The notes beneath the pieces are model-generated. The model saw only the letters and a list, made by a program, of their open reading frames with translations. It made no database searches and was not told where the DNA came from. Shown piece by piece: positions 3,322 to 64,000 of a DNA stretch of 64,000 nt. The position numbers were made by a program, and so were the translations under genes. Each line of letters opens with the position of its first letter. Position 1 is the stretch's first letter. Origin of the DNA: Haliotis rufescens (lineage: Eukaryota); assembly GCF_023055435.1 (NCBI RefSeq), contig NW_025964223.1:49042001-49106000 (forward strand). The letters are read 5' to 3'.

Positions 3322-4274
3322 TTCACACACCGTGGACGTAACCTCGTGTATATTCATTGGTGAGAAGAACATTGGGTTCCAATACGTAGGCGTGTTTCTG
3401 TCGCTGTCATATGATATGTACAGGTGGACATCTGATCTTGAAGAGTCCTGTAGTTTTAGCCTGCTGCTGCTGCTGCAATGTGGATGCCATGCAACAGATT
3501 TCGATAGCATATCCGTTCCGTTGTGTGATTATCCAATATGCTGGCAACTAGAATCATTTTTACATTAACAAGAAAAAAAGAGTTTTGCATTAGAATCTGA
3601 AAGATTGATCTATATCCACCATGCAATAACCACGATATGTCACGCACTGGCAAGTAGGTCAACATATTGGTTTAATGTTTGAGAAGGTTATCCAAAACAC
3701 ATTTCCCATACCATATTTTTGGTCCTGACCAAGAAGTATTATCTGCACATCCTCTTGTAAAGCATCAAACAGTAAAGTAGATGGTTTGTTCGGGATAAGT
3801 GATGGGTAAGACAGTGCCAGAGGAAATTTGCCAGCAATAGCCTCATTTGCAAGGCGTGTCACTAGTTTACGTATGGCTCATTTGTGAAGCTAGATAGTTG
3901 AATGATGTCATATTCATTTCCCGCACTAAGATAAGAAGATGAGGCATTGTGATCAACATTTATTCTTTCCTGTATTAACTAAGAACTACGGTTCTTCAAT
4001 ATGAAAACTGGTTGTCTCTGCCTGCAATAAATGAGACAGAATCAAGAATTTGTTGGGTGACTGAATTGTACAACATCGCCACATGAGAGAAATGTTCCCA
4101 TGTGACTTTCTCAGCTCCGAAATATGAAGATGTGGAATAGCCTGAGGCACACATACATTTTCTCAGCAAGGTGTGCTCCATTGATTCATATCCATGATAT
4201 TTAGTCTGCCACGATTCAACATAATTATAAGAAAAACATAAGCTGTTAAGCAGCTGTGTCTGTTAACCAGTTAA

Positions 4275-4530
4275 GAGTGAGTGAGTTAGGTTTAACGCCG
4301 CTTTTAACAGTATTACAGTTATATCACGGCGTATCAGCTTAATGTGCGAGGAAAGCCCGAAATGCTGCAGGTCTCAGTCATTTACCACTTCGATGAAACC
4401 CACGAGCATGGGTATGGTGCTGACAAACCAAGAAACATTATCGGTGTGAACCGGGATTCGAACCCACAATTATAGGTTTCTCGTGTGCCCAAGGGACGCA
4501 ACTTTGCACAGCGAATCGCCTTAGACGACT
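4275..4530 (-). mobile_element. SINE family C (tRNA-like head) inserted in copy D
   Basis: B-box ggttcgaatccc on the minus strand. Homologous to 19015-19237, 20425-20675, 35310-35530(+) and 36990-37105. Shared tail with (actc)n. Confidence 0.8.
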
Positions 4531-4571
4531 GTGTAAATACATTTATAACTTATGTATAACTTTGTCAAATC

Positions 4572-4680
4572 TTTTACGCCGCTTTTAGTAATATTCCAGT
4601 AATATTACGGTGGTGGACACCAGTAATGGGCTTTACACGTTGTACTCATGTCGGGGATCGAACCCGGGTCTTCGGCGTGA
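4572..4680 (-). mobile_element. SINE family A, partial
   Basis: Reverse complement of the 13180-13350 element (acgccgaagacccgggttcgat...aaaagcggcgtaaaa). Confidence 0.8.
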
Positions 4681-5469
4681 TAATGATCATAATCTGTTTT
4701 TTAATGTTATATTGGTATTTTATGTTTCATTAGTGTTGAGCTTTGTGTGAGTTGTTTGTGATATGATGGTACTGGCTACAGGATGAATAAGGATGATATT
4801 TCTTGATTCTATCTTCAATGGCTTCAGATATGTTGGCTCTAGTATTGAACTCAATCATCTCTAGATTTTCCTTATTTATCCCTTTCCCGTTTTTTCCGTG
4901 TCTGTGGTTGTTACGTTTTATTATCTTTGTTTCCCAAAATACTCGAAATGTGTCTCATTGCCATCGTCGTTGTGGCCCACAGGCTGACAATTTCTTTAAA
5001 AGACACTCTATGAATCTGATGCCATACCCTCCAAGTCGGAATTCATTCATCACTTTAAGACACATTGCCGTATCCTCTTATTTTTTTATCAGACTTGTTG
5101 CAAAATGCAAGGTTTCGGAGGTGCAAGTGCAATTTCGTGTGATTGTGTCATTAAAATAATGCATCGTATTACGAGTATTGGAAATATAATCTGGGGTAAT
5201 ATATGTTGATTCATCCTTTTTAAGTTGAGGCAATATCTAAGTTTTTTTTCTCAACAGTGTGCAACTAATGATGTTACAGGAAGTATACCTGACCAGCTGC
5301 AGGGGACTATGAAATGATTAAATTAATCTGTTATTGTTTTGGGTAGAATATAATCTACTTAGATACATTATTTCGAGTATGATACGTTAATATATTGGAT
5401 GTAAGTAAGTTAAATCCAGAAACGATTCAGTAGGATCATCCTGTAAGAGGTGTCTCCAACCCAGTGAGC

Positions 5470-6215
5470 CACATTGCTAGGAGAGGCGTTGGCAGGTGAG
5501 TCAGGATTCAAACTTGTAGAGGCGGCTTCAACTCCAGCGGTTCTATCGCTTGACGATATGATCACAAGTGAGTCAGGATTCAAACTTGTAGAGGCGGCTT
5601 CAACTCCAGCGGTTCTATCGCTTGACGATATGATCACAAGTGAGTCAGGATCTCTGCTTGTAGAGGTGGCTTCAAGTCCAGCTGATCTATCGCTTGACGA
5701 TATGATCACAAGTGAGTCAGGATCTCTGCTTGTAGAGGTGGCTTCAACTCCAGCGGTTCTATCGCTTGACGATATGATCACAAGTTAGTCAGGATCTCTG
5801 CTTGTAGAGGTGGCTTCAAGTCCAGCTGATCTACTGCTAGAATATGTGTTAACAGGTCAGTCACGGTCTCTGCTTGTAGAGGTGGCTTCAACTCCAGCGG
5901 TTCTGCTGCTTGACGATATGATCACAAGTTAGTCAGGATCTCTGCCTGTCGATGTGGCTCCAACTCCAGCGGTTCTATCGCTTGACGATATGATCACAAG
6001 TGAGTCAGGATTCAAGCGTGTAGAGGTGGTTTCAACTCCAGCGGGTCTACCGCTTGACGATATGGTCACAAGTGAATAGGGATCTCTGCTTGTCGAGGTG
6101 GCTTCAACTCCAGCGGGTCTAACGCTTGGCGATATGTTCAGAAGTATATTGCTAGAAGATATGTTCAGAGCTGAGTCCGGATCTCTGCTTGTAGAGGTGG
6201 CCTCAACTCCAGCAT
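5470..6215 (-). repeat. 72-bp (24-codon) minisatellite, ~10 copies; Ser/Thr-rich reading on the minus strand
   Basis: gtgagtcagg recurs at 5496, 5568, 5640 and 5712. The minus frame reads (IISSSDRTAGVEATSTSRDPDSLV)n, with TAA in two copies. Confidence 0.9.
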
Positions 6216-6284
6216 CTGGATCAATTCAGGCTTTCCTCTCACATTAAGCTGACACGCCGCGATGAAACTGGAATACTGTTAAAA

Positions 6285-9336: not shown

Positions 9337-9370
9337 GGAAATTCCCTCAACTGGAATATTGGGATTCCCC
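9337..9370. promoter_or_regulatory. Pair of NF-kB-type sites
   Basis: GGAAATTCCC (9337-9346) and GGGATTCCCC (9361-9370) match GGGRNNYYCC on one strand. Motif match only. Confidence 0.35.
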
Positions 9371-22930: not shown

Positions 22931-25900
22931 TCAGCATGTGGGTTGTAACATTTCCAGTATGCTTTGATTGCCATTACTTTGCGCATACTCAATAGGTGAT
23001 TGTCCGTGGCTATTCTGAGCATGAGCATCAAATCCACGACTAAGGAGTTCACCTACAATTTTGAGATTGTCATCTTTTGATATACATGCAAAGTGGAGAC
23101 ATGTTGACATGTCCCCACTTCTCAAATTTAGATCTGCTCCTTTGCTCAACATCCAATCAAACAGTGCTTTATGACCATTCTTGCAAGCTATCATGACTGG
23201 AGTCTGGCCAAGATCATCTCTCAGATTGATGTCGACTCCTGACTGGAGTAGAAATCCTGCCATGGAACAATGTCCTCCTAATTGTGCAACAACATGTAAA
23301 CAAGAACTTCCATCTGCTGTTTTCTCATTCACATCAGCACCTCGCTCCGTCAAGAGATTGACAATGTGCGTTAGATATTTGTGATTGCTGGCAGCTACCA
23401 TAAGGGGTGTTTTTCCTAGTTTGTCCTTACTGTCTGGGGATAGACCAAGGTCCAGTAGCATTGATGCAGCATGTATGTTGCCGCTCAATGCAGCATCGTG
23501 AAGACACGACGAGCCTGTATTATCTAGGGCGTTGATATCAGCCCCATATGAAACAAGAAGATAAATCACTTTAGGAGAATCAGCTTGAGTAGCATAAAAG
23601 AGAGGTGTTCTTCCACTATCATCTTCATCATTTACTCCAAAGCACGCCAGGGCCAGAAGTCTTTCGACAACATTCTCGTTGCCGCCTTTACAGGCAATAT
23701 GCAGGTATGTTTGATTCAAGTCATTTCTATCATAAGTATCAACATCCAGTTTTAAAAGATACTCAACAATGTGGAGGTGTCCTTTGAGACAAGCATTTCT
23801 TAGAGGTGTTGCGCCATTTGTTGCTTTTCTATTAATATCCAGATCTGTGCTGTGTTGGAGTAAGTATTCCAATATGTCCAGATGTCCAGATAGGCAGGAC
23901 GCATGGATACACGTGCGGCCCATATTGTCACTGCAATTTATGTTTGCCCCCTTCTCAAAAAGAAACTTGACAGTTTCCACGTTTCGTTTACATGCTGCAA
24001 TCAAAGGAGTCCATTTATTTCTGGTCAAACAGTTTATATCCTGTCCAGTCGCCAAGCATTTCTCAATCAGGGGAATGTTGCCTGCACTCGCAGCAAAATA
24101 AATGCACGTAGAATCACCTTTGTCCTTCAGTGATATCTTTGCTCCATGATTTAGTAAGACATCTGCTGTGTCTCTAAAGCCATTGATCAAAGCTAACATT
24201 AGGGGTGTTCTATCATAATCAGACAATGGGTCAACCTCCAACCCCATACTTAACAACCATTCGACAACACGAGTGTGTCCCTGCATAGCTGCTACATGGA
24301 GACAAGTTAGCTTATTATCATCTGCAACGTCTCGTTTAGCTCCTTGACTGACAAGCTCCATTGCAGATTCAAGACTTCCATTTCTACAGGCAAAGATGAT
24401 TGCAGTTCTTCCTCGTCCACCTCCTGCCTCAATGTTCATTCTCCCGTTTTTCAACAAAATCTTTACAATATCTATCTCGTTCTTAACACATGCCAAATGT
24501 AAACTGTTGTCCTTGTTTGCAAATGTTGACAGATCTGGTTCTGGTGTAGCTCCGCTCTCTAGCAGGAAAGTAACAGCATCGGCTTGTCCATAGTAGGATG
24601 CATACATTAAAGGTGTTCTTTCATGTTCACCATGACTGTTCAAGTCCATCTTTAGTGAACAGAATATTTCAATGGTATCCTTGAACCCTCCTCTTGCTGC
24701 TAGATGGAGGCAATTGTCCCCTTCTTGGTCTTGCAATGATGGATCAGCTCCCTTTTCAAGCAGCACTTGAACCAGCTTTATATGACCCCTGTAAGTTGCA
24801 TACATAAGTGCAGTCATAGAGTTTCCCCCACGTATGTCAACCTCTGTTCCAAGCTTTATCAGTTCCATCACGATCTCAGTATGACCATTTGCTGCAGCAA
24901 TATGGATACATTTATCTCGGCTATTGCCATGCATGCGGGGTGTTTCTTTCTCATGTGTTTTTTTAAGTTCTAATTGACTAAACGTATTTGAGAGACTCCA
25001 GTCATATTGCTTTCTTTCTGCCTGATAGTCAGCAATATCTCCAACACAAATTCCTTTTATTTCGTCAAGACATGGGTCAGGATACTGCATCAAAAATTTG
25101 AATGAATCTATTGTTCCACTCATGCAACATCCAACATATCCCTCCAGTAGTTCTTGAGTGCTGAATTTTGTAGATTTGAGGGCTCGTTTACAAACAGAAT
25201 TAACACCTGAGAATGTTGTCCAAAAAAGAAATCCTAAGCCATGATCAGTATCTTTGCCATGTAGGACATCTTCTAGATCTTTGTCAAGTTGTTGAAACAG
25301 TTGATTAGCAATGTTTTCCAAGAGGAGTGATGGATGTGAGAGTGGCGGTGCAAGGTTAACAGAAACCAGTTCATGTACAAGGCGCGCAATAAGTACACGC
25401 ATGCCAGACACGTCAAGGTAAATATTGAAGTCATAGTTGGTGCCACCACTAGGCTTAGAACTGGATCCATGCATGTCAACTTTCACCCTTTCCAATATGA
25501 ACTGAATGCTACAATGTCTCACCACAAACACAGGGTTGTGATATCCCACCACATAGGCAACTGCATCGTTAATAGTCGGATGATCGAACTTGGTGATGTC
25601 CCCACCAGAAAGAAGCATTCCAATTTGACTTCGGGCAGCAATGTTCACTTTCACCGGCAGAGAATCTGAATAGGTAAGATGAGGAAGAGTTGTGCAAACC
25701 TTTTTCAGCATTTCCTGAAGTATGGCATGTCCACTTGCTTGGCTGTCCACAAGATCAATAAGGTTCAGACTTCCATCATTCAGCATCATGAGAAGGAACA
25801 CAGCTGTTGTGCTGGTTTCTTCACAAATCTCTGTAAGCACCTGGACAAGATATGCCAATGGTTGCTGAAAAAACTGTATTGCTGATATTTTGGTCCAACG

Positions 25901-26586
25901 ATTTTTCCCGTAGAGCTCACAAATATGTGGAAAACCTAAGAGGTTGTATTCTAAATTTGAGATTGCTCTGATGTCTTCATCTTTAAGAAATAGACTGGAC
26001 AGTTCTAAATGTTTTCTCAGTATCCTTTCTTTCTCTTCTGCGTCAAGTTTGGTAAGAGACATTAACCTAGCTACTGTACTTGGCCTGAACAATGAGCTTT
26101 GATATTTCCTGATTTTTGGTTCAACTTCATTAAAGATGTTAGTTCTACTATTGAAAACAATTTTCAAAAGCCTTTCGTGCTGTTTGTTCTCTAAATGTTC
26201 GTCTTTTCCCGCCCTTTTAGGGGAGTTTTCTCTGTTTCTCTGATATTTAAAATGAGATTCAAGATCATTAAAGAGCTTTCTACAAAGGACAAACTCAGCT
26301 GTTGTTGGAGAGAAATGGCCAAAAAGATCATCAAATATCAGCAAGGTATGCCTTTTCAGACTTATGTCTTTAAAATCAAAATCTGAAAGACTTTCAATAA
26401 ATCTGATATCATACTCTTTCAATCTGTACTTCTCCATCAACATGAGTGACATCACTGTCTTTCCTGATCCCGGAGACCCACAGATGGTCACAACACCCTC
26501 AGAAGACAATGTCGAAGAAACATAGTTGTAACCTTTCGTCTGCACAAAAGTCTGCTTGGCATTTGCCATTTTCTCTCTGACAATTT
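22931..26586 (-). CDS. NLR-like STAND NTPase (nSTAND3-like) + ~20 ankyrin repeats, copy A, main terminal exon
   Basis: Uninterrupted ORF with Walker A GSPGSGKT, Walker B LLIFDDLFG, sensor-like NSR, GFP motif and serial TPL/LHxA ankyrin repeats. Acceptor tattacag| in phase 1. The spliced model with the three exons below gives 1413 aa. Confidence 0.93.
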
Positions 26587-26789
26587 CTGTAATACAAAAA
26601 AACACTGATACAGTCTAGCCATATATTGTTTGTAATTGTAATATAAAGTGGGCGGCAAAAGAAAGTATAGGTCGAGTTCCATGATCGATAAAAAATAACA
26701 AGAAGAGGTTTTGTTGTGAATGTTCCCTGCTGTTGGTTTTGTAAGAATGGAAGCACAACTGGCTGCAACACTTGGTCTCTGTACTACAC

Positions 26790-27650
26790 AGCGTTCAGGT
26801 TTCCCTGCATATTCACCAAATCAGTCTTCTGATCTCCACAAATACCGCCCCACACCATGACACATCCCCGCCAAATGGATGGACCTCTCGAATACACGCC
26901 GGAGCCAAACGTTCCCCTCTGCGTCGATAAACTCGTTCTCTGCCGTCATTTCGAAACAAGTTAAACCGACTTTCATCAGTAAGCAGCACTCGACGCCAAT
27001 TTCTCACTTGCCAGCGTCGAACCTGCCTCGCCCATCGCAGTCTCAGGCGTCGATGTTGAGCAGTCACTACCATACCTCGGAAAGGACGATACGCTCGGAT
27101 TCCAGCAGCACGAAGTCGTCGTAGTACTGTACGTTGGCTAATGGGATGTCCCAACGCTGTTGCTGCCGTCGCCGTCGCCGTCGCCGTTACGAATCTGTTT
27201 CGCAGGTGAATGAGCCGTATCTGACCCTCTTCCAGTGGTGTTGTCACTCGGGGTCGTCCGGTTCTAGGCCTGTCCAGTGTCCAACCTCTCTGCCTGTTCC
27301 GTTGAATCAGCTACTGTCAATGGTGTACAACCAAACCTTCTGGCAATTTGGACCTGTGTTGCCCCCATTTCGGCCATACCGATGGCTCCCTCTCTCTCTG
27401 CTCCTGTGACAGTCGTGGCATTTCTTTTGTGTGCTTTCATCACTTGTGGTTATACCCTGCAGACGAAACCTGTTTCATCATTTTTTTGTCACCGCACGAG
27501 CGCCGTCAAAGGGGGCGCGTTCGGGTGAGTTGTTTTTTGGTACCTGTTCCTGGGCAGTCATATTCCCAGTACCCACTTTCCACTAGTTATCGCTGTTTTT
27601 AGGGAAATTACAAATTGTCAAACTATCCTTTCTTTTGCCGCTTTGTTTAG
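26790..27650 (-). mobile_element. Tc1/mariner remnant in an intron of copy A
   Basis: ISQRTVLRRLRAAGIRAYRP...WRRVLLTDESRFNLFRNDGRERVYRRRGER covers the HTH region and the first catalytic Asp. Confidence 0.9.
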
Positions 27651-27968: not shown

Positions 27969-28055
27969 CTGGAATCCCGAATTTTCTTTTGGCAGCTGGC
28001 ATTTGAAGAACATTAGATACCTGCATTTCCTTGACAAGAGTAATCGATCTCGGGG
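27969..28055 (-). CDS. Copy A coding exon 3 (87 nt)
   Basis: ttttgcag| ... ccag|gtattt, phase 1-1. Encodes PRSITLVKEMQVSNVLQMPAAKRKFGIP and ends like the matching exons of B (LP) and C (IP). Confidence 0.65.
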
Positions 28056-29180: not shown

Positions 29181-29226
29181 GCCTCCGAAAGATATCCATA
29201 TCTGCGCCAGTATGCAAAACGTCTTC
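29181..29226 (-). CDS. Copy A coding exon 2 (46 nt)
   Basis: ttgttacag| ... |gtaagt, phase 0-1, bridging exons 1 and 3 in frame. Encodes EDVLHTGADMDIFRR. Confidence 0.55.
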
Positions 29227-29559: not shown

Positions 29560-30590
29560 ATGATAAACGCCATTGCCATGACACGATGTGGCGTTTTCTG
29601 TGAGGAAGCAGTTATTGTAATGGACATGATATGACGTTTTCTATGAGGAAGCAGTTATTGTAATGGGCATGATATGACGATTTCTGTGGGAAAGCAGTTA
29701 TTGTGATGAACATGATATGACTTTTTCTGTGGGAAAGCAGTTATTGTAATGGGCATGATATGACTTTTTCTGTGGGAAAGCAGTTATTGTAATTAACATG
29801 ATATGACTTTTTCTATGAGGAAGCAGTTATTGTGATGAACATGATATGACTTTTTCTGTGGGAAAGCAGTTATTGTGATGAACATGATATGACTTTTTCT
29901 GTGGGAAAGCAGTTATTGTAATGGGCATGATATGACGATTTCTGTGGGAAAGCAGTTATTGTAATTAACATGATATGACTTTTTCTGTGGGAAAGCAGTT
30001 ATTGTGATGAACATGATATGACGTTTTCTGTGGGAAAGCAGTTATTGTGATTAACATGATATGAATTTTTCTGTGGGAAAGCAGTTATTGTGATGAACCT
30101 GATATGACCTTTTCTGTGAGGAAGCAGTTATTGTAATGGACATGATATGACTTTTTCTGTGGGAAAGCAGTTATTCTGATGAACATGATATGACTTTTCT
30201 ATGAGGAAGCAGTTATTGTGATGAACATGATATGACTTTTTCTGTGGGAAAGCAGTTATTGTGATGAACATGATATGACTTTTTCTGTGGGAAAGCAGTT
30301 ATTGTGATGAACATGATATGACGTTTTCTGTGGGAAAGCAGTTATTGTGATTAACATGATATGAATTTTTTTGTGGGAAAGCAGTTATTGTGATGAACCT
30401 GATATGACCTTTTCTGTGAGGAAGCAGTTATTGTAATGGACATGATATGACTTTTTCTGTGGGAAAGCAGTTATTGTGATGAACATGATATGACTTTTCT
30501 GTGGGAAAGCAGTTATTGTAATGAATATGATATGACTTTTTCTATGAGGAAGCAGTTGTAATGAGCATGATATGTCGTTTTCTGTGGGTG
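29560..30590. repeat. ~40-bp minisatellite, ~25 copies, intronic
   Basis: Unit is approximately gaaagcagttattgtgatgaacatgatatgacttttttctgtgg. Confidence 0.95.
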
Positions 30591-30777
30591 ATAATATGCG
30601 GTTATATGTAAAGTAGTTATAATAAGTATATACTAATAATTGTATGGCGTTATCAATGGGGAAGAAGTTATTATGCCACAAACAGCAATTTGATCTTTAA
30701 TGTTTTTAGACTGTTTCTGGACTACTTTAAACAGTTATCATGGTTTCAAATATAGACAGTGTATTTATAGTACTTAC

Positions 30778-31230
30778 ACGTGGAGAGACTGCCATGTTGC
30801 CAGCAGTGTGAGGAACCAAACTGGTGGCGGTGCTGTCATCATCTACAAAACGCGCATGAAACTGCGTGTCTGCGTCTACATATGCACCAGCTGCTCGTAT
30901 TAAGGGAGTGTCTACGGTTGTATATGGCTGTCTATTTCTGGGGCTGTTCATATCTTTGTTTTCTAGTCTGCTTCGCCCCATGCCTACTCCGGGGCTGTCC
31001 ACTTGCGTGTTTTCTTGATCGCTTGTCCAAGTGCCTACTCTGGGGTTGACTTTTGCTCGCCCCCTACCAAAGCGTCTCCATCCTTCTCTCTCTCCTTTGT
31101 TAGATTCGTCGTTTGTGTCGCGTCTCCCTCTACCCCTTCCTCTACCTCTACCTCTCCCAGTGCTGTCACCCACACTACCATCATCAGCAACTGCTGCAGT
31201 TCCGTCATTGTCTGTGACTCTGTGATCCAT
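30778..31230 (-). CDS. Copy A coding exon 1: disordered, RG-repeat N-terminus
   Basis: tttcag|acctcttcattaacATG resembles copy B's aacag|accaacaATG. 151 codons, MDHRVTDNDG...GRGRGRGRGRGRR...VSPR, then |gtaagt. Confidence 0.7.
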
Positions 31231-31519
31231 GTTAATGAAGAGGTCTGAAACATGCAAACATTCCATCAACTGAAAATGAAAGCAAAATTCAGTTTATCCT
31301 TGTATGCACGTCAATGTGAGCTTCTTTGATATTTTTTTTTTACCTTTTTATAGAATACATAACTATGATCCTCGTTCAGCATACTTGTGTTGGTAAGATT
31401 CACCAAAGTCGAAATGACTTGCGCTCACTTTGTTTTCAAAACGAAACTGACACGTCGCTTTATGACTGAAAAACTATTCTTTGCAATATTCTTACAGTTT
31501 TTACAACGTTATCTTAATA

Positions 31520-39431: not shown

Positions 39432-42400
39432 TCATATTTGAGACAAATAATCACCAAGTTCACAATGTCCATGAGTTTCAGCATGACTGATACAATCATG
39501 GCCATTCAGGTCAATTGCTTTTCGGTTCGCTCCTGCACTTATCAATAAGTCTACCACTGCCCGATTTCCTTGTCTTGCAGCACACATCAATGGCGTCACA
39601 CCAAGCGTATTCGGAGCATTGACATGGAGACCCCTTTCAAGGAGCAGTTTGTGTGTCTCTATGCTGATATCTTGGATATCACATGCATAATGCAGCAAAT
39701 TAGACTTGGTGCCACTGCTGTCCAATGTACTGACAGAAGCATTTCGGGACAGCAAGAGGCTCAAAATGTTCACGTTGTCCTTGCTGATGGCATACATGAC
39801 TGGGGTCATGTTGTCATCATCCTCTTTATCAATATTTAGTCCATGATCAAGTAATTCATTTGGAATATGTGTGTCATTGGTGTCTGACATGCATGCTAAA
39901 TGCAAACAACTGGCGCCATGATCGGTTAAGCAGTGCAGATCAGCACCTTTAACAAGCAGTAGGTCAAATTGCTCCTTGTTACCACTCCTGCAAGCAGACA
40001 TGATTGGAGTATAGTCATGTGAACCTTTGGTGTTGATATCCAAACCACTGTCCAAAAGATATTCTGAGGTGGCAGTGTGACCACCAGATTTTGCGGCAAT
40101 GTGCAGGCACACGTCACCATTTTCATCGCTCACGTTGATGTCTGCGTCTCTTTCAACAAGAATGTTGACAACTTCACTTCGATCATCTCTGTTCTTGGAT
40201 ACACACATGAGAGGGGTTCTGTTGGTAGAATCACGAATATCAACAAACATGCCCAAATCAAGGAGTTTGGCACAACCCAATGCATTTCCAAACCATGCTG
40301 AAGTGTGGAGGGTTGTTTGCCCATGATTGTTTCGAATATTCATGTTTGCACCATGTTCAACAAGGAAGTCAACCATATCAAAGCATTTGGATTTAACTGC
40401 AAACATCAAGGGTGTCATGCCATTGCAGTCAATGTCATCAATGGGAATTATCTCCAACAACCGCTCTGCTATTTCCACGTGGCCACTGCGACATGCCACA
40501 TGAAGACACGTCTGTTCGAACTTATCTTTTGCTAAGATGTCTGCACCTTTTGACTGCAAATACTCCACAATATCAGTGTGACCATGAAAACATGCTGTCA
40601 TAACCGGTGTTCTATTTTTTGGGCCGCATTTGTTGATGTCTATTTTTGGAAAAGTTGATATAAGATACTCAACCATTTCAAGGCTACCCCCAATGCAAGC
40701 AGCATTAAGGCAACCATTTCCCAAATTGACATTGGCGTCTTTCGCCACCAAACATTTAACAAGGTTCAAATCCCCTTGTTTGCAAGCACGCATGACTGGG
40801 GTTTGGTAACTATTTGAACATGAGTTGACATTTTGACCTTTTTCCAGGCAAAGTTCAACCAAAGGCAATCTCCCGGATTGTACAGCCATATGCACACATG
40901 AGACCATTGAATGATCTTTTAGAGCTATGTCAGAACCATGTTCAATAAGCCAGTCTACCATGTCAGCATGGCCATTCTGCAATGCAAACATCAAAGGTGT
41001 TCGCCCTGTATCATTAGTACAATCAACAACGATTCCTGGATTTAAGGAAAGGAGCCATTCAGCTGTGGGAACATGCCCTTTCATCGCTGCAAGATGTAGG
41101 CAAGAAAAGCTTGTTTCATCCAAGACACTGGTATTTGCATGCCTGGCTACTAGTTTCTTGGCAGTTTCAAACTGCCCATTCCTGCAAGCATACATCAATG
41201 GGGTTCTGTTTCGCTGACCCGTCACTTCAATGTCCATTTTGCCTTCATCAAGAAGAATCTGAACAATTCTTATTTCACCCTTCACACATGCAAGATGAAG
41301 ACAGTTGTCTTTTTGGTCAATAGATGATACATCAGGATTTGGCAATGCTCCCTTCTCCAATAAGAGCTTCACAATATCCTCATGCCCATTGTATGAGGCA
41401 TACATCAGTGGCGTGCGTCCATGTTCACCACGTTTGTTGACATCCAACGTTTCTGCAATTAGGGATTTAGCTAAGTCAACAGACCCCCCTCGACATGTAA
41501 GGTGAAGGCAGTTGTCACCTTCTTCGTCCAACAATTCCGGATTGGCCCCTCGTTTGAGCAATGTTACAGCTAAGTCAGTATGACCAAGGTAGCTTGAATA
41601 CATGAGTGCTGTCATGTCATTGCCTCCCTTGACGTCAATTGGTGTACAAACCGTATCAAGGAGTAGTTCTACAATTTGAGTGAATCCATTTGCAGCTGCA
41701 ATATGAATCAACTTATCTTTGTTGTCCCCATGCATGCGGGGGGTTACTTTCTCGGGACCTACATCAGTTTTAGTGGGGCTGCATGCTGTGGATAGGCTGC
41801 GTACAAATTGCCTTGTTTCTTTTCTTATACCCAGGATATCCCCAACACTGACTGTTGCTATTTGGTCATAAAAAAAATCTGATTTAGCAACAAGTACCTG
41901 CAGAGAAGAAACATTCCCACTCAAGCAACAACCTAGATATCCTTCAAGGATTTCAGAAACTTCAAATGAAGTATGCTGAAACAAAGATTTGCTCACAGGA
42001 CCAATGCTAGCAAACGATGACCAGTATAAGAATCCAAGGCCATAACCCCTGTCATGGGAATGCAAAACTCCTTCAAAGTTCTCACGTCTTGAAAGATTTG
42101 AAAATAGACAGTCCACCATGCTTTCTAACATGAGACACTGATGTGACAAAGAAAGAGCAATATGACCATCAGTAATCTCCCGAGCAAGTCTCTCCACAAG
42201 CACCATGGCAGCATCTTGTTTAAGGTATATCATGAAGCTGGTGACATACCCACCACTGGGAGCCTCAGTCATGTAGTCTTCTGAAACCTTTGTCCTTTCA
42301 ATGATGAACTTGAGACTGCAGTTTTCAAGAATGAAGACAGGGTTCATGTCCCCCACAACAAATGACACAACATCATGGATAGTCGGATGACTAAACTTGA

Positions 42401-43390
42401 TGCAGTTTTTGTCAGATACCAAAAGCGTACGAATTTCGTTTTTGGCAGCTTCGCTTAAACGATGAGGATGAAGAATATCCGGCAGTATTTCTTGTACACT
42501 GGATAGCTTCTTCTCAAGTCCACTACTTTTTCGCTTTTCAGCACTCAACAAATTGATCAAGTTCAGTGTTCCATCATTGAGCACCATAAGCAGGAGCACA
42601 GCTGCTCCGTAGTTTGGATCCTCGGAGATGAATATGTTGCTTATTAAGTCATGTAAATACGTCCAGGGCTCCTTGAAGAATTGCACGGCCTATTCCTGTG
42701 AAGACCAATTGTCCACAAACAACTGACAGATATATGGAAATCCCAGTGTCCTGTATTTTAAATGTGCGATGTGTTCTACATCGACAGAAGTAACGCTTAT
42801 GCACCCTTTTCTCACATGTTTGCGAAGTATGTTTTCTTTTTCACGATCTTTCAACTCTGTTATGGTTAGATCGGCAATAGTGCTGAATCTAAACAAGGAT
42901 GTTCTGTATTTCTGTAACATCGTGGAGACAATGGGGTGTTTGGAAATGTTTGTCCTACTGCACATGATAATTTTGAGATTTCCTGAGATGTCATCACTTT
43001 TATATTTATCTCCAATTTGTCTTTTAGTCCTCTTTTCATCTAACCGTTTGAAGTGTGTTTCCAAATAATTGAATATATTTGTACAGCGAACCCTAATTTC
43101 TGATGTTGGAGAAAATCTACCAAACACGTCATCAAGAACAAGCAATGTTGGTTCACTCAAATTGACGTATTCTTCAACTTTAAAACTTGTCACTTCATCC
43201 ACAAATTTCACCTTGTATTTCTGCTTTCTGTATGTACCCATTATGTAAAGAGCCATAGTTGTTTTTCCTGATCCCGGTGATCCAGTAATGAGAACATGTC
43301 CATGGTGAGCCAGAGCATCACAAACATTCAGGTAAGCATCCGTTTTTACAAAGATGTCTTTTGCAGATTTCAACCTCTCATTAACCATAT
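39432..43390 (-). pseudogene. NLR-like STAND NTPase + ~23 ankyrin repeats, copy B, main exon with a single in-frame TAG (42690-42692)
   Basis: ORFs 42690..43388 and 39432..42686 are in the same frame (NWSSQE*AVQFF). GSPGSGKT, LLVLDDVFG and LGFP are present, and the exon is otherwise intact. Could be a null allele, recoded, or a consensus error. Confidence 0.85.
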
Positions 43391-43552: not shown

Positions 43553-43645
43553 CTGGAAGTTCACCATCACCGCTGACAGTTGTCCCTTGTGAAATGTTCA
43601 GGTTGCCAATAAAGTTCACAATGTTCAAATTTTCAAAATGTACAC
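43553..43645 (-). CDS. Copy B coding exon 3 (93 nt), amyloid-like motif
   Basis: gttttag| ... ccag|gtatac, phase 1-1. Encodes GVHFENLNIVNFIGNLNISQGTTVSGDGELP. Same length and phase as 63349-63441. Confidence 0.8.
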
Positions 43646-44339
43646 CTAAAACAGAAAATACAAGAGAAAACAATTATTCATTCAAAAACATCAGGATTGT
43701 TATTCATGTGTACACGGATAATCAATATACGTAATATGTTATATGTTCCTGGTAAACAATTGTAAAATGTCATATCTTAAGCTGCCATTGCTGACCCTAC
43801 TTTTCGTGTATTTTCGTGTATTTTGTATGCAACACTCACCATCGGGAATTGACGCCAATGAGCATTCTGCCAGTGGTTGCTGTATTTCTGAAAATCAAAT
43901 AATGTTGTAAATCGTCTGACATAGACCCAATATACGCAACCAGAAAGGCTGCCGGATCTCAAAGTTGACAACGTATCAGTGATACTGTTACAGAGGTAAA
44001 CAATTTCCATAAAAAATAATAATGAAGAGTCCATTGCACGAGCCCGACTATATCATGAGTATGTGTCAGTGCATCACTATCAAATTTGCTGTTGAAAAGA
44101 TTGGGATAAAGTTTCATGAACACTATACACTTCCCACTATACAAGCGTACATATACAAAAATAACGAAGCGTAGAAAGACGCGTTGAGATATTTTAAATG
44201 ACATATTATTTGACTGTATCATGAAAATAGGACGAAGCTAATTATATCTCTTGGTGATATGTTCATATTTCATATTAACTGAACAAAAAGCAAACATTAA
44301 TTCAATCCTCAGTGTGTGATAAACTGTTTCTACAAGAAC

Positions 44340-44487
44340 CTTCACGGTTGATCTCTCGAGGCCCAATGTTCTCGACATATGTTATCCTCCGTCGTACAGG
44401 GTGTGCTGTATCCTCTGACTGACCATTGTCTGTTTGAGATAGCATGACTGACCCTCCAGTTGTGTCTTCATATCCTGAAGGTTGATC
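44340..44487 (-). CDS. Copy B coding exon 2 (148 nt)
   Basis: tcctgcag| DQPSGYEDTT...YVENIGPREINRE, phase 0-1. The end is homologous to copy C's EQKIGPPQITHP. The donor gttctt is weak. Confidence 0.7.
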
Positions 44488-44790: not shown

Positions 44791-44981
44791 CACACATTAA
44801 TGGAACAGAAGCATTTATCAAATGTTTTACAACAATTTGTAACGCATGCCTTCATTTATGGTTTCTGTTAGTAGGTTCAGTCGTACAAAATAAGCCGTGT
44901 TCATCATGTCTATAACCGTATCAACGTGATGCCATCTTTCTATTGTTTTCGTTAAAAGGATAGAATATTTCCATGTCCTAC

Positions 44982-45023
44982 CTGATCACTATCATTAGGA
45001 CCGCTGCCCCCACTTTCTGCCAT
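44982..45023 (-). CDS. Copy B coding exon 1
   Basis: tttaacag|accaacaATGGCA has a good Kozak context. Encodes MAESGGSGPNDSDQ, then |gtagga, phase 0. Confidence 0.7.
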
Positions 45024-45099
45024 TGTTGGTCTGTTAAATGAAATTGAGAAAAGGTTCAGTGTTAATTATGGATACAGTACGTTACTCGAAACACAAACA

Positions 45100-49417: not shown

Positions 49418-49558
49418 NNNNNNNNNNNNNNNNNNNNNNNNNNNNNNNNNNNNNNNNNNNNNNNNNNNNNNNNNNNNNNNNNNNNNNNNNNNNNNNNNNN
49501 NNNNNNNNNNNNNNNNNNNNNNNNNNNNNNNNNNNNNNNNNNNNNNNNNNNNNNNNNN
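49418..49558. other. Assembly gap (141 N)
   Basis: Run of N. Confidence 1.
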
Positions 49559-51359
49559 GACCTCCAAGTCACGATATTATTTCATAGGTCGTTGTATTGT
49601 TATTAAATGATAACATAAATGGTCAATGCAATAATCTGTCTATATTATCCACCGAAATGATAAGATATACTTACAGTGGATGTATGCAGCGGATATAAAC
49701 CCATCTAGCTATCATAGGTCTACCAGAGAAACACAACTGCACTGACAACAACGAGAATACACAGTCTGTCCGTCAGACGCAGTTCGCGGAAATGAGACCT
49801 GCTTTCGTTGAAATACCAGGTTACCTTGACCTAAAAGTCACATAAATCGCTGCGGTTAAACAGCGCAGTGACACCATGTCAATGCCGACCTGACACCTCG
49901 AGCGTGACATATACTAGGCTGTTAATATAATAGATGCGTTTAGAGATGAACAGATTCTCGCTGTATATAACGGACACCCTATGATACCGAAATAAAATAC
50001 CGACGATAAATGTCGTAACGTAATACCACTAGTGCTATGGACATGCACATCTGACGATGTGTACATATTATACAGTTCAATGACGACATCAGCACGAGCA
50101 TCGTTCAGGTAAGAGCATCTTCTCATTTGGATATGTTTCAATTCCAAAAGGAATTAGATGTTCATAGTGCATGCGTGTAAATTGTGTTTGTGGTATTTTG
50201 GGTCTCTCCGCTTTGTAACACATGTAGGATTTAAGTATGAATTTGAAAGATTTTTTTCGAATATCCTTGTTAGTTACCGCATGGTCATTAATGTCTGTGT
50301 GATCGTGTACGGCATGGCGTCTGCAATGTAGGAATATAATGGGCAGGGGGGGAGGAAAAGGTTTTCTTTCGAGACAATATATTTCGTAGTAATTAAATTC
50401 GACATAGATGATCGACTGTCAGAATTTCTTTCGAAATCAAGATAAATATCTATTTTTTCATCATAAACTGAAACTGAATTTAACATGAGCTGTGCGAGGA
50501 ACACGGGCAGTAAACATTCGTCAACATGTCAGCTATATCGCCGCTTGGGCACCAGCAATCCTATTACTGTCACGCAAGCATGGATGCGCTCGGGCTATGA
50601 CAGTGTTTTCTAAGCTGTAGGTCTACTCATCACCTTAATAAAGTCGTGAAATTTGGATAATGCACATTATTAAGACCGTTGTTTCTTGACGTGATAATGA
50701 CAGCCAGAATCAAAATAAACCTTGCACATATCATAATGTGTTATACCAACTACCAGTTAATGATCCTTCCTTTGGGAATTTATGCATATATGATTCATAA
50801 CGTATTTGTAACTTTTCTTACCTCTGTTCAGACAATTCCTTCCTGTATTTTTCGCTGAAGACGATTCTAGATGTTTATATTGAATGCTGCACACGGCTGT
50901 GGGGGAACCCCGCTTGGGAAATTTACATTATACTGAGCATGCGCCACAGTCGATCACATGACCAGTGTGTACGAAGTGACAGTTAAATGGCAACAGCAAC
51001 CGTGAAACATTCAGGGATGTTGTGCACCCTATTAGTATTACATACTTTTAAAAGCAGTTGAAATCACTTGCATAACGGGTGTTATATTGTCCGTATATCA
51101 AAATAAACGCATTGTTTTACATTATGCTAAATTTTAAAACTCTGTATCCTATCTTTACATACATCTATACACCTTATTCTATATTTGGGGTTTATATATT
51201 TCATTTGGAAAATATTTTGTAAATACTGAAAAACAGATTTTACGAAAAGTGATTTCCCCCCAAAATGATTGTTTATTGATTGCCCAGAAAAATGTGTTGT
51301 GTGTTTTCAAATAAATTGTTTGACGCCTCCCTCTTTGAGAAAAGATTTCTTCTTGGTGG

Positions 51360-57945: not shown

Positions 57946-57984
57946 AATTAGAGGTACAGCTCGGATCGCCAAAAACACCGAAAC

Positions 57985-58200: not shown

Positions 58201-59172
58201 TTGTGTGGGTGTCAGGTTGCCTAGTACATGATTGGACATATACACGAATACACATTCCATTATTTACAATATTCAAGTGGAGAAATACGATAAAACAACT
58301 CATTTCACTATACCAGTATGCATATTCAATCACTCAATGATATACTTTTAATGGAGACGTAGAAGTATACCGTGTAAAAAGAAGTTGACATTTCCTTAAA
58401 GGTCTTTCTTTACAACATTTCAAAATTGATGTTTGTTTAACACAAATTTTGTAACAATATTCAATATGAATCGTGACGAATGTACACAATAATCAATACA
58501 TGCATGTATATGTAACTGTATTTGGTATATATGAACAAGAACAGAGAACGGAACATATACATAATAATTAAATTCCTGTTATGGTACATGTGAATGGATA
58601 CAAAGATGTGATGAGATACTAGAGAAACAGGCCATACCTAGGTACACTAACACAATGTTATTTTTGCTATCCTGAACAATGTGTTGAATTAAATATGATA
58701 AAGAGTTACTATATATAAAGGATACCATGTATTTCAATGTTTTGGAAATGTAAATTAATGTTTGAATTTGTAATTCATACAACAAAGTCATCATATTTTG
58801 GATTGTGTTCATTGTTTTTAATTTTGACTACCAAATAAAATATAGTATGGAAATAGGTTTGGTCTTCTTTCAACAAGAATGCAATGCTTTGTACTGTCCT
58901 ACCATCAAGTTTAATATGTTAAATACGTTTGTGTTCAGTCGACATAGTACACATATTTTGTATTTAAATAGGTTGGATCTTCTTTCAACAAGAACGCAGG
59001 GATATTTGTTCATGTCTAGAAAACTGTAGTCCTGTCCATTGCACAGTGCAATGTTTTTGTACTGTATTACCAACAAGTACAATATGTTACATAAACTTTG
59101 TATCCAGTAGATGTGTGTCATAGTACACATATGTACTATTAACGTGTTTCACGTATACATGTTGTAGGCATT

Positions 59173-62100
59173 TCAATACCTATCGTATCTTCTTCTTGAT
59201 TGATTGGCCAGGTACTTAGCCAATTCATGATGACCTTGCCTTTTAGCATACCAGACACAATTTCTGCCATTCTTATCAACCTTTCTTGGATCAGCTCTTG
59301 AATTTAACAGTAGATCTACAACAGCCCGATTTCCTTGTTTTGCTGCAAGCATCAATGGCGTCTCGCAGTAGTACATGTTAGCTTCATTTACACCTCTTTT
59401 CTTAAGCAGTAACTCTATTTTCTCTGTGATCATGCCTTGAAGGTTGCATGCATAATATAGCAAACTGGTCTGATTTCCTCTTTTATCAAATGCAGTGAGC
59501 GATGCATTCCGTGCCAAAAGGAGTCCCAAGATGTGGACGCTGCCTTTGCTGATGGCATACATAGCTGGAGTTTTGTTCTGTTCGTCTTGTGCATTGATGT
59601 CAGCCCGACGATCAAGTAGTTCATTAACAATGTGAGCATCATCGGTGTTGGCCATGCATGCCAAATGTAGACAACTTGCTCCATTAGCATTTGTGAGATG
59701 AAGCTGAGCTCCGTTGGCTAGGTATAAGTCAAAGGCTACTGTATTGCCACTTCTGCATGCAAACATGATGGGAGTGTGATCATAAGCGCCTAGCGTATTG
59801 ACATTCATATCCCTATCTAGTATATACTTTGCAAATGCTGGATGACCATCCGATTTAGCTGAAACATGCAATACTGTATTATCATCCTGATCTCTCACAT
59901 TTATATCTGCTCCTCTTTCAACTAGAAGTTTTGCAATTACTGTGCAATCTTTCTTGTTTTTAGCAAGAGTCATCAGGGGGGTTCTGTTTATAGAATCAAG
60001 AACATCCACATCCATGCCAAGATCAAGAAGTTTAGCACATGCATTTCTATTCCCAAACCAGCAAGCTGTATGGATATTGGTTTGTCCATGACTGTCTTTT
60101 GTATGAATGTTTGCACCATTTCGTACGAGGCAACCTATCAAGTCAGGGGAGTCAGACCTTACTGCATACATGAGAGGTGATATCCTGTTTGCATCAAGGG
60201 CATCGATACGCAGAAGTTTTACCAGCTTTTCAACAAGCTGTAAGTTGGCACTCTTTCGACAGGCTGCATGAAGACACGTTTCTTTAAATTCATCTTTACA
60301 CGTCATATCTGCACCACAAGACTGCAAATATTCCACAATGTCAATGTACCCGTGAAAACAGGCTGTCATGACAGCTGTTCTGTTCTTTGGTCCACGTTCA
60401 TTGATGTCTATATCTTGGCCATATGACACAAGATATTTGACCATTTCAAGACAGTTCTCGGTACATGCGGCGTATAGGCAACCACCTCCAAAGTTGACTT
60501 TGGCTCCTCTCGCAACCAATGCTTTGACAAGATCTACCTGTCCCCCTTTACATGCCATCATGACCGGTGTCCAACCAGATTCCGTGAGCGAGTTGACATC
60601 TAGACTATTTTGGAAACAAATTGCCAACAGGTGCCACATTCCTGATTTTGCTGCCATGTGAAAACATGTAGATTTTCTATGATCTGTGATTGCAATGTTT
60701 GCGCCTTTTTCTATCAAAAAGTCAACCATTTCAGTGTGACCATTTCTCATTGCATACATCAAGGGTGTTCTCCCATCTGAATTAACACAGTCAACCTTGA
60801 GTCCAACATTCAAACCAAGGAGCAACTCAACAGTTGGTATATGTCCTTTCATCGCTGCAAGATGTAAACAATTCATATTGCCTTCGTCTAAAACATTTGC
60901 TCTGGCATTCCTGTCTACCAGTTCTTTGGCAGTTTCTAGCCGTCCATGCCTGCAAGCATACATCAGTGGTGTTCTTTTTCTTTGACCAATAACTTCAATG
61001 CCCATAGCGCCTTGATCGAGAAGGATCCGAACTACACCTGTTTCACCCGTAACACAAGCAAGGTGGAGACAATTTTCCCTTTGTACCATAGAAGATACAT
61101 CAGGCTCTGCCTCTGCTCCATTCTTCAGTAGAAAGCTCACAAGGTCACCGTAACCTTTGTACGATGCATACATCAAAGGTGTACGTGCAACTTTACCTTC
61201 TTTGTTGACATCCATATTTTTTTCAAGGAGGAGTTTTACAATAGCTATGGGTCCTCCTCGGCATGCAAGATGAAGACAGTTATCGCCTTCTTCATTCAGC
61301 AGTTCCAGGTCAGCCTGTCTTTGGAGAAGGATTTCTGCTAACTCCTTGTGTCCAAGGTGGCAAGCATACATAATTGCAGTCATGTCATTTCCTCCTCGAA
61401 CATCAATATGTATACCAACACGATCGAGCAGTAGTTCTACTATTGCAGTGAATCCATACGCAGTTGCTATATGAATTAGTTTATCTTTGTTGTCACCATG
61501 CGATCGAGGTGTTTCAATATCAGATGGCACTTCTGTTTTGGTAGGGCTGCAAGCTGTAGATAAGGAGCGAACTAGCTGTCTTGTTTCTTGTTTGATACCG
61601 AAGATGTCTCCAACATCAGTGGAGGCAACTTTGTCCAATATGTCCTTTGAGTTTTCAATGAGAACTCGTAATGAAGACATGTTTCCACTCATACAGCAAC
61701 CAAGATATCCTTCACGGATTTCATGAACAGAAAATTTGGTGTGCTCAAATGACATTTTGCTTACAGGACCAGTACTGGAGAATGATGACCAGTACAAGAA
61801 GCCCATGCCATGCTGCATATCACAAGAATGCAAATATTGTTCAATGTTGCCATGTGACGAGAGATTTGTAAACAGATATTCGGCCATATCTGCTCGCGAG
61901 AAACATTGATGTGACAATGGAAGAGCAATATAACCGTCAACAATCTCTCTTGTGAGTCTTTCCACCAGCCCCACAGCAGCATCTTGTCTAAGATTTATCA
62001 TGAAGCTGTGTATATCACCACCACTTGGATGATCTGTCTTGTGGTCCTCTGAAACCTTTGTCCTTTCGATGATGAATTTGAGACTGCAGTTTTCAAGGAC

Positions 62101-63171
62101 AAAGTCGGGATTCATGTCCCCTACAACAAACGCGACAACATCATAGATAGTTGGGTGACTAAATGTCATCATGTCACCCTCAGACACCAAAAGAGTGCGA
62201 ATCTCGTTTTTGGCAGCTTCGTTTAACCGATTTGGATGAAATATATATGGCAGTATTTCCTCAACCTTTGCTATTTTGTGTCGAAGTTCAATATTCCTCC
62301 CACTTGGTCGAGCCTGTTGGAGCTGAATCAAATTCAGTGTTCCATCATTGAGGACCATAAGCATTAGCACCGCAGCTCTGTAGTTTGGGTCATCAGATGA
62401 GAATATGTTGCTTATCAAGTCATACAGATATGCCCAGGGCTCCATGAAGAATTTCACAGCAACGGCCTTTGACGAACAATTGTCTGCAAACAACTGACAG
62501 ATGTATGGAAAACCCAGTGTCTTATATTCCAATCGTGTATTGGTGTATGTCATGTTCAGTGAGATCCAATCTCGATTTGACCAAATGTTTTCGAAGTATC
62601 GATTCTTTCTCATGTTCTTTCAGCTCAGATATTTTCAGCTCAGCTATCGTGCTTTGTCTGAACAAGGATGTTTTGTATTTGTTTAACATAGTAGTGACAA
62701 TTTGATGCTTGCAAATGTTTGTCCTGCTGCTCATGATAATCTTAAGAGATATTTCAGGAGTTCCAGATGCCTCATCACCTTTAGTTTTATCCTCATCTTG
62801 TGTTTTCCTTCTCTTTTCCTCCAAACGTTTGAAATGTGTTTCCAAATAATCAAATATCTTTGTACAACGAACTTTCACTTCAGATGTAGGAGCAAAGCGA
62901 CCAAACACATCATCTAAGACAAGCAGTGTTGGAACTTTCAGATTAACATAAAGTTCAACTTTGAAACCTGCAACATCATCTATAAATTTCACATTGTATT
63001 TCTTTTTCCGGTATCTACCCATGATGTAAAGTGCCATTGTTGTTTTACCTGAACCAGGTGATCCAGAAATGAGAACATGTCCGACGTTTTCAAGAGCATC
63101 ATAAACATTTTCATAAGCTGTTGTTTTTACAAAAATGTCTTTTGCAGATTTCATTTTCTCTCTGACCATAT
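59173..63171 (-). pseudogene. NLR-like STAND NTPase + ~23 ankyrin repeats, copy C, main exon with a single frameshift (~62535-62545)
   Basis: The NTPase frame (GSPGSGKT, LLVLDDVFG) runs to HDIHQ. Homology to copy B (EHIAHLKYRTLGFP) resumes in another frame as TRLEYKTLGFP, about 2 nt short. The rest is open to 59173. Confidence 0.85.
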
Positions 63172-63348
63172 CTGCAAGGATATAATATAATGATATGAAT
63201 AAGGACAGGTACACTAATCAACTTGTAACTGTCAGTTGTATATGTTTTCTCTCTTTAAAATGATCAAATAGAGTACAGTCTATATAATGTCCGTTGTTGT
63301 ACACATATTTGTACAAATGAACATTGTGGTTTTTGAAAGTATGCACAC

Positions 63349-63441
63349 CTGGAATATCTTCCACAGCACCGTGTGAGGTCCCTGTTGCAACAATCACGTT
63401 GTCAGTGTCGTCAGTGATGTTCAACCTATCAGGGTGCGCAC
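63349..63441 (-). CDS. Copy C 93-nt exon
   Basis: ttgcag| GAHPDRLNITDDTDNVIVATGTSHGAVEDIP |gtgtgc. Positional homolog of 43553-43645. Confidence 0.8.
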
Positions 63442-63816
63442 CTGCAACGTTAAAGCAATTCCAGCTTTAAAATTTCATGACATTATTAACCAGTTTCGCA
63501 CATAGCACAAATGAATACTTTTTAAACAATTCCGCCAACATTAATTACATATCGTTGCGTCCTCACCTCACCCTTATCCCAACCCACACTTAATCCCTTA
63601 CAACATATAATACTCACCACTAGGAACCGATAACAGTGAAATGTATGCCATCTTTTGCTGAATATCAGCGAGTCAATGAAAAATTCTATTTAGATAAATA
63701 TACTGAAGTAGTACTTCACTATGTTTATTTAGAATGAAGTACATTTGAAAAATAAATGTATTTAAGTTATTGGTTGACATTGTGGTCGATGTACACACTG
63801 GCGCTTGTACACTCAC

Positions 63817-63970
63817 CTGGATGAGTGATTTGTGGCGGGCCAATTTTTTGTTCTGATGCTGTTCGACCATGTTCAGAAGCTGTTGCCCCGTCTAGTATGA
63901 GCTGATCAGTGACTCTCATGGATGCCATGACCGTCTCATCTGATGTTCGACGATACAGTACTGTTTGAGT
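63817..63970 (-). CDS. Copy C upstream exon (154 nt); the gene continues beyond the window
   Basis: ttccttcag| TQTVLYRR...EQKIGPPQITHP |gtgagt, phase 0-1. Confidence 0.75.
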
Positions 63971-64000
63971 CTGAAGGAAATTGATAGAAAACAACTGACC

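Follow-up and report, generated by a model that had tools for sequence, protein, structure and literature searches.

A tandem cluster of nSTAND3-ankyrin genes in the abalone Haliotis rufescens, with N-terminal tails that carry no known effector domain

Receptors built from an N-terminal tail or effector, a STAND NTPase and a repeat array are known from animal NLRs (NACHT-LRR) and from plant NLR clusters, where they form tandem families that evolve by birth and death and by recombination between paralogs. The bacterial anti-phage protein Avs5 (AVAST type 5) combines SIR2, nSTAND3 and TPR modules, and it is to this protein that nSTAND3 has been assigned (PMC12931631). Fungal NLRs carry NACHT or NB-ARC NTPases together with ANK, TPR or WD repeats, and in some of them a short amyloid motif (NWD2/HET-S, PP or sigma) replaces the N-terminal domain and is matched by a partner gene next door. 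Such NLR-linked amyloid motifs have been described in fungi, bacteria and archaea, and the animal RHIM is found on kinases and adaptors (PMC12261475, PMC13506858). In this work, we analysed a window of 64,000 nt (the whole stretch of DNA under study) from Haliotis rufescens, contig NW_025964223.1, which holds on its minus strand, the strand of every gene feature given below, a tandem array of four copies of a related gene, named here A to D. Our preferred reading, to which we give a probability of about 0.55, is that they belong to a mollusc-wide and hugely expanded STAND family, made of a disordered motif-bearing tail, an nSTAND3 NTPase and about 20 ankyrin repeats, which would act through NLR-like, ligand-triggered oligomeric signalling.

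The three large genes A, B and C come from the six longest open reading frames (ORFs) of the window, and each of them includes a giant exon defined by ORFs and Pfam matches: 22931-26586 for A (ORF 22931-26605, 1224 aa, stop codon at 22931-22933), 39432-43390 for B (ORFs 39432-42686 and 42690-43388) and 59173-63171 for C (overlapping ORFs 59173-62613 and 62522-63214). The giant exon of A encodes the nSTAND3 NTPase, a helical/winged-helix part and about 20 ankyrin repeats, all of it intact, B is interrupted by one TAG stop and C by one frameshift. The fourth copy, D, is a decayed relic of the NTPase module at 3593-5071, where tblastn with A aligns residues 43-162, 259-278, 319-385 and 394-497 at 31-55% identity in frames -1 and -2, among stops, frame changes and deletions, and finds no ankyrin part. 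A fifth and intact copy, E (public protein P0002, XP_048239781.1), follows some 16 kb beyond the window, with its NTPase at C445:49121811-49123493. Altogether, ORFs, Pfam and tblastn agree with a previous sequence-only reading of this DNA, which had described four co-oriented paralogs in different states, and the single giant exon that it saw for NTPase and ankyrin array, entered in phase 1, is confirmed by RNA joints in A and by splice sites and protein matches in B and C.

The class of the NTPase is clearly revealed by profile searches. Pfam nSTAND3 (PF20720) is matched at the start of each gene with 72.8 bits in A and 70.4 bits in both B and C, well above its cut-off of 27.2, and is followed by dense ankyrin matches (Ank, Ank_2 to Ank_5) with E values down to 1e-151. 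The same NTPase family was matched in 31 of the 32 closest representatives, which come from several Haliotis species and of which 28 have ankyrin repeats, and in all 28 of the more distant ones. Both the Walker A (GSPGSGKT, residue 43 of the open frame, at about 26479) and the Walker B (LLIFDD, residue 88, at about 26344) of gene A are intact, and the G, G, G, K and T residues of Walker A are invariant in the family alignment A3. The original proposal of a STAND NTPase is thus upheld, with nSTAND3 and without any NACHT match. For the fold, the module that was modelled is that of the paralog P0029 and not that of A; its AlphaFold confidence (predicted local distance difference test, pLDDT) exceeds 90 over most of residues 71-420 and drops to 64-86 around 161-200. 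Comparison with solved structures by Foldseek gave EfAvs5 (9jap) as the best match, together with the wheat NLR resistosome, SAMD9, MalT, NLRP2/3, Dark and CED-4, and ranked ORC/Cdc6-type AAA+ proteins behind the STAND proteins, for which the probability is 1.00 with template modelling (TM) scores of only 0.2-0.33.

In this regard, the abalone proteins share with Avs5 the nSTAND3 module, the best fold match and a tripartite plan with C-terminal helical repeats, but they lack SIR2, carry ankyrin instead of TPR/Sel1 repeats, are eukaryotic and intron-containing, and are hugely expanded. Membership in Avs5 was rejected, since SIR2 is absent and the NCBIfam Avs5 model, whose cut-off is 1000 bits, scores only 14.6, and the similarity in sequence to STANDs of phage defence (PADLOC PDC-S73 at 2e-11, NCBIfam DS41_1 and Avs5) is weak and stays far below the membership cut-offs. 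A strict NLR, defined by NACHT or NB-ARC plus LRR, was rejected as well: NACHT is not matched, the NB-ARC matches seen in some relatives (E 0.002-0.1) all fall short of the cut-off, and the repeats are ankyrin and not LRR. With animal and plant NLRs the family has in common the general plan, the tandem birth-and-death, the recombination between paralogs and a modelled NTPase that resembles NLRP2/3 and the wheat resistosome; on the other hand, no PYD, CARD, TIR or CC is present in the abalone proteins.

The N-terminal part of the family is best defined for gene A. A pyrimidine tract and an AG precede its giant exon, whose first position is 26586 and which is entered in phase 1 as read from the sequence. 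Upstream of this exon lie exon 3 (27969-28055, 87 nt, phase 1-1, supported by RNA joints), exon 2 (29181-29226, about 45 nt with a boundary ambiguous by one G, placed by record 1 of run X1 and by its GT/AG context) and exon 1 (30778-31562, holding the 5' untranslated region and an RG-rich, low-complexity protein start, known from spliced contigs of X1 and X5). The joints 26586>27969 and 28055>29181, with GT..AG ends on the gene strand, are found in runs X1 and X2, the first of them also in X5; X1 and X2 belong to one study and X5 to another, and all are taken as RNA from their behaviour, as in the DNA-like run X15 the introns of A are covered and the joints absent. One contig of 2632 nt joins the giant exon, 27969-28055, 29181-29225 and 30777-31138, and both record 1 of X1 and record 24 of X5 span through the giant exon. 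Spliced contigs extend to 31138 (X1) and 31245 (X5), and another contig of X5 runs collinear with the genomic sequence from 31216 to 31562, which places the in-frame stop at 31294-31296 inside the first exon. Of two possible starts for the resulting RG-rich N-terminus, the ATG at 31230 gives 196 aa and that at 31266 gives 208 aa, the exons having been joined for the frame check alone and searched for domains one by one. The spliced N-terminus of about 196 aa, which had been proposed for A from an ATG, is thereby borne out in its three small upstream exons by RNA contigs of three runs, and the transcript adds no upstream death-fold or TIR exon. The product of A has no identical or near-identical entry in the two protein collections searched, in which the products of B, C and E are present, so that A appears unannotated; an expressed and intact gene is probably missing from public annotation.

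Searches for an effector domain gave the same result throughout. No Pfam family was matched on A exon 1, on other upstream ORFs or on residues 1-161 of the public protein P0001, Death, CARD, DED, PYD and TIR were found by Pfam in none of the 32 closest representatives, and the other ORFs of the window are without a Pfam match except for a Tc1/mariner HTH domain. A comparison of the N-terminal 135 residues of E with the ESM Atlas returned no usable look-alike. The lack of CARD, DEATH, DED or TIR noted before thus extends from the window to the 32 closest representatives, and, judged by sequence profiles, it is genuine as far as known domains go and characterizes the abalone clade as a whole, beyond this cluster. 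The first exons vary by subfamily, being RG-rich in A, made of 31-residue tandem repeats in L004 and acidic elsewhere. In the subfamily with repeats, the first coding exon is a long Gln/Thr/Gly-rich array of the 31-residue unit (L004:2599-4680, with about 20 copies, and L017:7137-8874). Immediately before the NTPase, two Haliotis proteins, P0023 and P0035, show a hydrophobic stretch resembling a membrane span and then basic residues, which suggests, as far as the sequence can indicate, that members of this type are membrane-anchored, receptor-like versions.

A folded domain does occupy the N-terminus in more distant relatives. HEPN_DZIP3 was found at this place in 9 of the 28 more distant nSTAND3-ankyrin representatives with long N-termini, one of them from oyster; in the abalone genome, HEPN_DZIP3 is matched only once, on a different contig. 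These HEPN_DZIP3/nSTAND3/ankyrin proteins, Crassostrea/Magallana gigas among them, share with the abalone family the NTPase and the repeat type (E 1e-8 to 1e-13), but theirs is a folded N-terminal HEPN and that of the abalone clade a disordered tail with a motif exon.

The motif, which most relatives conserve, was recognized by reading the representatives as a recurrent Asn/Gly/Val/Ser-rich segment upstream of Walker A, at a fixed distance from the NTPase. At more than 20 paralog loci, it lies on its own small exon of 75-111 nt, with AG/GT flanks, directly before the giant exon, and an alignment of 23 such exons gives the pattern hydrophobic-x-hydrophobic-[ST]-N-x-[ST]-N-[VI]-x-[VT]-G, followed after four or five residues by G-[CTA]-hydrophobic-x-[QE]. 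The corresponding profile has more than 70 matches in the genome at E<0.01, most of which fall by their coordinates within or beside nSTAND3 clusters, some of them 0.25-0.8 kb upstream of an NTPase; among proteins, 12 of 86 real N-termini give a score with it, as against none of 20 shuffles and none of the remaining protein parts. The motif of the B lineage is about 70% identical (own count) between H. rufescens and H. asinina P0160, compared with 22-44% for other parts of the tail.

Three paralogs have amplified the 5' half of the motif exon with its acceptor into long tandem arrays upstream of the real motif exon (L016:2248-3031, L019:4765-8585 and L020:971-1577), with about 59 nt between neighbouring copies, and these arrays may be alternative acceptors or only minisatellite. 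Other matches to the motif profile occur away from the listed NTPases, at C583:50881088-50895930, where the group repeats every 2.47 kb, at C610:429307 and at C2:23527865-23880083; they may represent additional paralogs or genes of a different type that carry the motif.

Several observations weigh against the preferred reading. The recovery of the motif profile is partly circular, as the profile was built from exons of this same genome. In the C/E pair, the motif exon has about 70% nucleotide identity (own count), similar to the flanking intron, with a mean of 80% over the whole alignment, and exon 3 of A, which holds the position of the motif exon, is a degenerate version when aligned with 22 other motif exons. 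The motif core of P0029 is disordered in its AlphaFold model, with pLDDT below 50 and no structure. The defects of B and C were read from one assembly, and public names such as 'ankyrin-2-like' and 'PP6 regulatory ankyrin subunit-like' suggest other roles for the family. Moreover, an immune function, a ligand and a downstream partner are what we infer by analogy with other receptors.

The tail may also not be the output of the protein, serving as a regulatory latch, as a fast-evolving bait ('tripwire') for pathogen enzymes or as a linker, in which case the NTPase or the ankyrin array would recruit partners in trans. We consider this rather unlikely. The tail is indeed the part that evolves fastest, with 22-44% identity between species against 60-88% elsewhere, and the ankyrin arrays have the size of a scaffold. 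In addition, the model confidence of P0029 exceeds 90 from about residue 71, and its climb at this place indicates that the conserved 3' end of the motif exon may belong to the folded NTPase module; the sole invariant column of the motif-exon alignment is a Gly near this 3' end, at the rise in confidence (around residue 70 of P0029), so that conservation may be partly structural. Nevertheless, within the large 'GCLSQ' clade the disordered motif core is better conserved than the NTPase module, with about 55-60% identity (own count) against 39-46% for the whole proteins, and all subfamilies examined retain the motif on a symmetric exon of its own, both of which speak against this alternative.

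A second alternative takes the motif exon for an amyloid-like, beta-templating motif in the manner of HET-s/NWD2, PP, BASS or the animal RHIM, so that oligomerisation of the receptor would nucleate a cross-beta fold templating the same motif on an executioner protein. It is recommended by the N-terminal position of the segment on a STAND protein, by its short, alternating Asn/Gly/Val/Ser-rich pattern, by its disorder in the monomer model, by pseudo-repeats in some members (P0017 and P0030) and by one motif class whose spacing resembles the RHIM core when compared by eye, with no tool; the work cited describes NLR-linked amyloid motifs only in fungi, bacteria and archaea (PMC12261475). The fungal proteins offer the closest parallel, since in them too a STAND NTPase carries a short motif where an N-terminal domain would stand, the sensors are helical repeats, and the families are large, polymorphic and subject to domain re-assortment, but their NTPases are NACHT or NB-ARC and their partner gene is next door, and no abalone partner was found among the inspected motif hits. 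As for the RHIM (RIPK1/3, ZBP1, TRIF; Drosophila cRHIM), the likeness consists of a short Asn/Gly/Val-Ile-rich segment, and direct tests were negative: the Pfam RHIM model has no match in ten motif-bearing proteins even at E<=10, and a PDB search with the 23-exon motif profile retrieves, instead of any RHIM chain, only a designed LRR at E 0.89. In the abalone genome, the RHIM model has 11 matches, 4-5 of them over the cut-off, which lie on other contigs or millions of bases off on two contigs that also hold nSTAND3 genes. Those above the cut-off include C35:4328554-4328613, C35:4289066-4289122 and C35:19245429-19245470.

Against the amyloid alternative stand, besides the failure of the RHIM on all three counts, the weak constraint on the motif in the C/E pair and the results with the motif profile, whose hits are mostly at known nSTAND3 clusters and include no motif-bearing gene without an NTPase, the outliers at C583, C610 and C2 having been left uninspected. 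With RHIM tests negative and no motif-bearing partner found, the amyloid reading is possible but unsupported, and we hold it unlikely. The stronger version, in which the motif would be a new beta-templating class replacing the HEPN effector and these proteins the first animal STAND/NLR-type receptors to signal in the fungal and bacterial amyloid way, we rate as equally doubtful. Of the earlier idea of signalling through short motifs, the presence of a short and conserved motif exon is supported, signalling through it is plausible, and the motif failed every test for a RHIM.

In the preferred reading of the family as ligand-triggered STAND receptors, which draws on the analogy to NLRs, to the Avs proteins of bacteria and to the NLRs of fungi, a non-self or danger ligand would be bound by the ankyrin array. 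This binding would license a nucleotide-dependent oligomerisation of the NTPase module, and the tails thus brought together would allow the motif to recruit or activate a downstream partner by induced proximity. The tail and motif of the abalone clade would then occupy the place of the nuclease-like HEPN domain in the more distant relatives, oyster among them.

The size and the history of the family fit this view of a receptor repertoire. A search with residues 1-560 of A found at least 78 copies in this genome, distributed over many tandem clusters (78 scored matches at E<=1e-36 among 316 candidates), and an exhaustive HMMER search of 1.84 billion representatives yielded 348 relatives, those looked up belonging to Haliotis species, Littorina, Gigantopelta, oyster, scallop and freshwater mussel. 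The birth-and-death evolution proposed initially is supported by two intact copies, two with a single lesion each, relics and the 78 or more paralogs arranged in tandem clusters.

A further feature of this history is the exchange of modules. Windowed identities, a list of mismatches and disagreeing half trees place a mosaic boundary of gene B at 41700-41800. Compared with H. cracherodii P0001, the NTPase module of B is 55-75% identical and the ankyrin array 96-100%, and the switch comes abruptly at residue 547 of the giant exon (near 41750), with dense mismatches up to 547 and none until 741; the ortholog pair formed by E and P0153, on the contrary, is 86-100% identical throughout. No public protein was found close to the NTPase module of B. 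The opposite case is given by H. asinina P0160 and P0161, with NTPase modules that are 90-98% identical and ankyrin arrays that are only 30-74% identical on the two sides of the same junction, and the trees of the NTPase and ankyrin halves disagree accordingly. A divergence of 35% beside one of 2% in a single gene is beyond neutral decay and points to recombination or gene conversion between paralogs. On the evidence of these sequence comparisons, the NTPase and ankyrin halves are re-assorted at least twice, inside the giant exon and at their junction. The family as a whole has conserved its phase-1 introns, and it was at this intron that an exchange of the N-terminal module had been postulated; the mosaic boundaries that can be demonstrated sit instead at the NTPase/ankyrin junction within the giant exon, and this part of the earlier proposal was not supported. 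A count of substitutions on the ankyrin surface between orthologs gave few differences and few anchored repeats.

That the family is not immune at all, being composed of ankyrin scaffolds or regulatory ATPases of cell biology that expanded for other reasons, is very unlikely in our opinion. This alternative draws on the public labels, ankyrin-2-like or PP6 regulatory subunit-like, but such names are misleading, as they rest only on the ankyrin repeats. Moreover, the known functional nSTAND3 member is the anti-phage Avs5, relatives of the family carry HEPN, and at least 78 tandem copies with pseudogenes and re-assorted modules are the signature of genes in conflict. Finally, the idea that a known effector domain was missed, in a far-upstream alternative exon or in an exon within an assembly gap at 49418-49558, could appeal to that gap upstream of B, to upstream exons of B and C that are known from sequence alone and to several isoforms in the public models of E, but it is highly improbable given that the spliced contigs of A end in an exon with an in-frame stop before the ATG, that such a domain occurs in 0 of 32 close Haliotis models and that no ORF of the window matches a Pfam effector.

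Upstream of their giant exons, B and C follow the plan of A, with small phase-1 exons delimited by AG/GT sites and by matches to P0001, P0002 and P0015. In B, the motif exon lies at 43553-43645 (93 nt, phase 1-1, AG/GT flanks) and matches residues 129-151 of P0001, exon 3 at 43840-43887 (48 nt, phase 1-1) matches residues 113-129 of P0001 in a suitable splice context, and exon 2 at 44340-44487, also placed by splice context, matches the N-terminal exons of P0001 and E and contains a candidate ATG at 44445. The N-terminus of about 94 aa proposed before for B, read from this ATG through 44487-44340, 43887-43840 and 43645-43553, is plausible as a prediction. In C, the motif exon at 63349-63441 (93 nt, phase 1-1) is symmetric and diverged, two further exons at 63616-63666 and 63815-63973 were located by tblastn with P0001, P0002 and P0015, and the first exon falls past the end of the window (L001:145-210).

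As to the lesions, the premature TAG of B is at 42690-42692, inside the NTPase module, at a site occupied by Lys in P0001, and the public protein P0005 is identical (100%) to the part of B past this stop. The frameshift of C was located near 62538-62551 by reading three frames against E, about 25 codons upstream of the place homologous to the stop of B, and P0015 corresponds to C as far as this frameshift and ends there. C is about 86% identical to its intact neighbour E, and P0002 is 100% identical to exons just past the end of the window. The assembly gap, a run of N at 49418-49558, presumably falls in a 5' intron or in intergenic DNA upstream of B; it is upstream of all coding exons of B and is touched by no exon model. 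The family-related matches nearest to it are at 49676-49708, with two in-frame stops before it and non-coding here, and at 44981-45028.

Outside the window, an isolated NTPase fragment at C445:48888727-48889368, about 153 kb before its start, is 44% identical to residues 7-232 of A; its open frame of 239 aa may be that of the public protein P0019, and its presence indicates that the array of copies and relics is longer than the window. Between B and C, the segment 54000-56000 has a G+C content of 0.48, compared with about 0.39 around it, and overlapping ORFs of 120-236 aa on both strands, none of them with a Pfam match. The last intron of A contains the remnant of a Tc1/mariner transposase at 26750-27650 (minus strand; HTH_Tnp_Tc3_2, E 7.6e-12, for 26813-27247), an element of high copy number with a word depth of 40,000-100,000 in run X15. 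Intron 1 of A holds a tandem array of a 43-bp unit repeated 23 times (29594-30588), and another array, with a 178-bp unit repeated 11.7 times (31642-33729), is found just upstream of exon 1; the depth of run X15 over 31500-32299 is about 0.2-1 million.

Molluscs have no adaptive immunity and few classical NLRs, and infectious disease troubles both the aquaculture and the conservation of abalone. A STAND-ankyrin family of some hundred genes or more, which duplicate, break and re-assort their sensor and switch halves, is, in this context, a strong candidate for a diversified system of intracellular surveillance. The binding partner of the motif would reveal how a STAND receptor devoid of an effector domain signals in an animal, and work on this partner would also test whether the motif-based, possibly amyloid, signalling of fungi and bacteria exists in animal NLR-like proteins.

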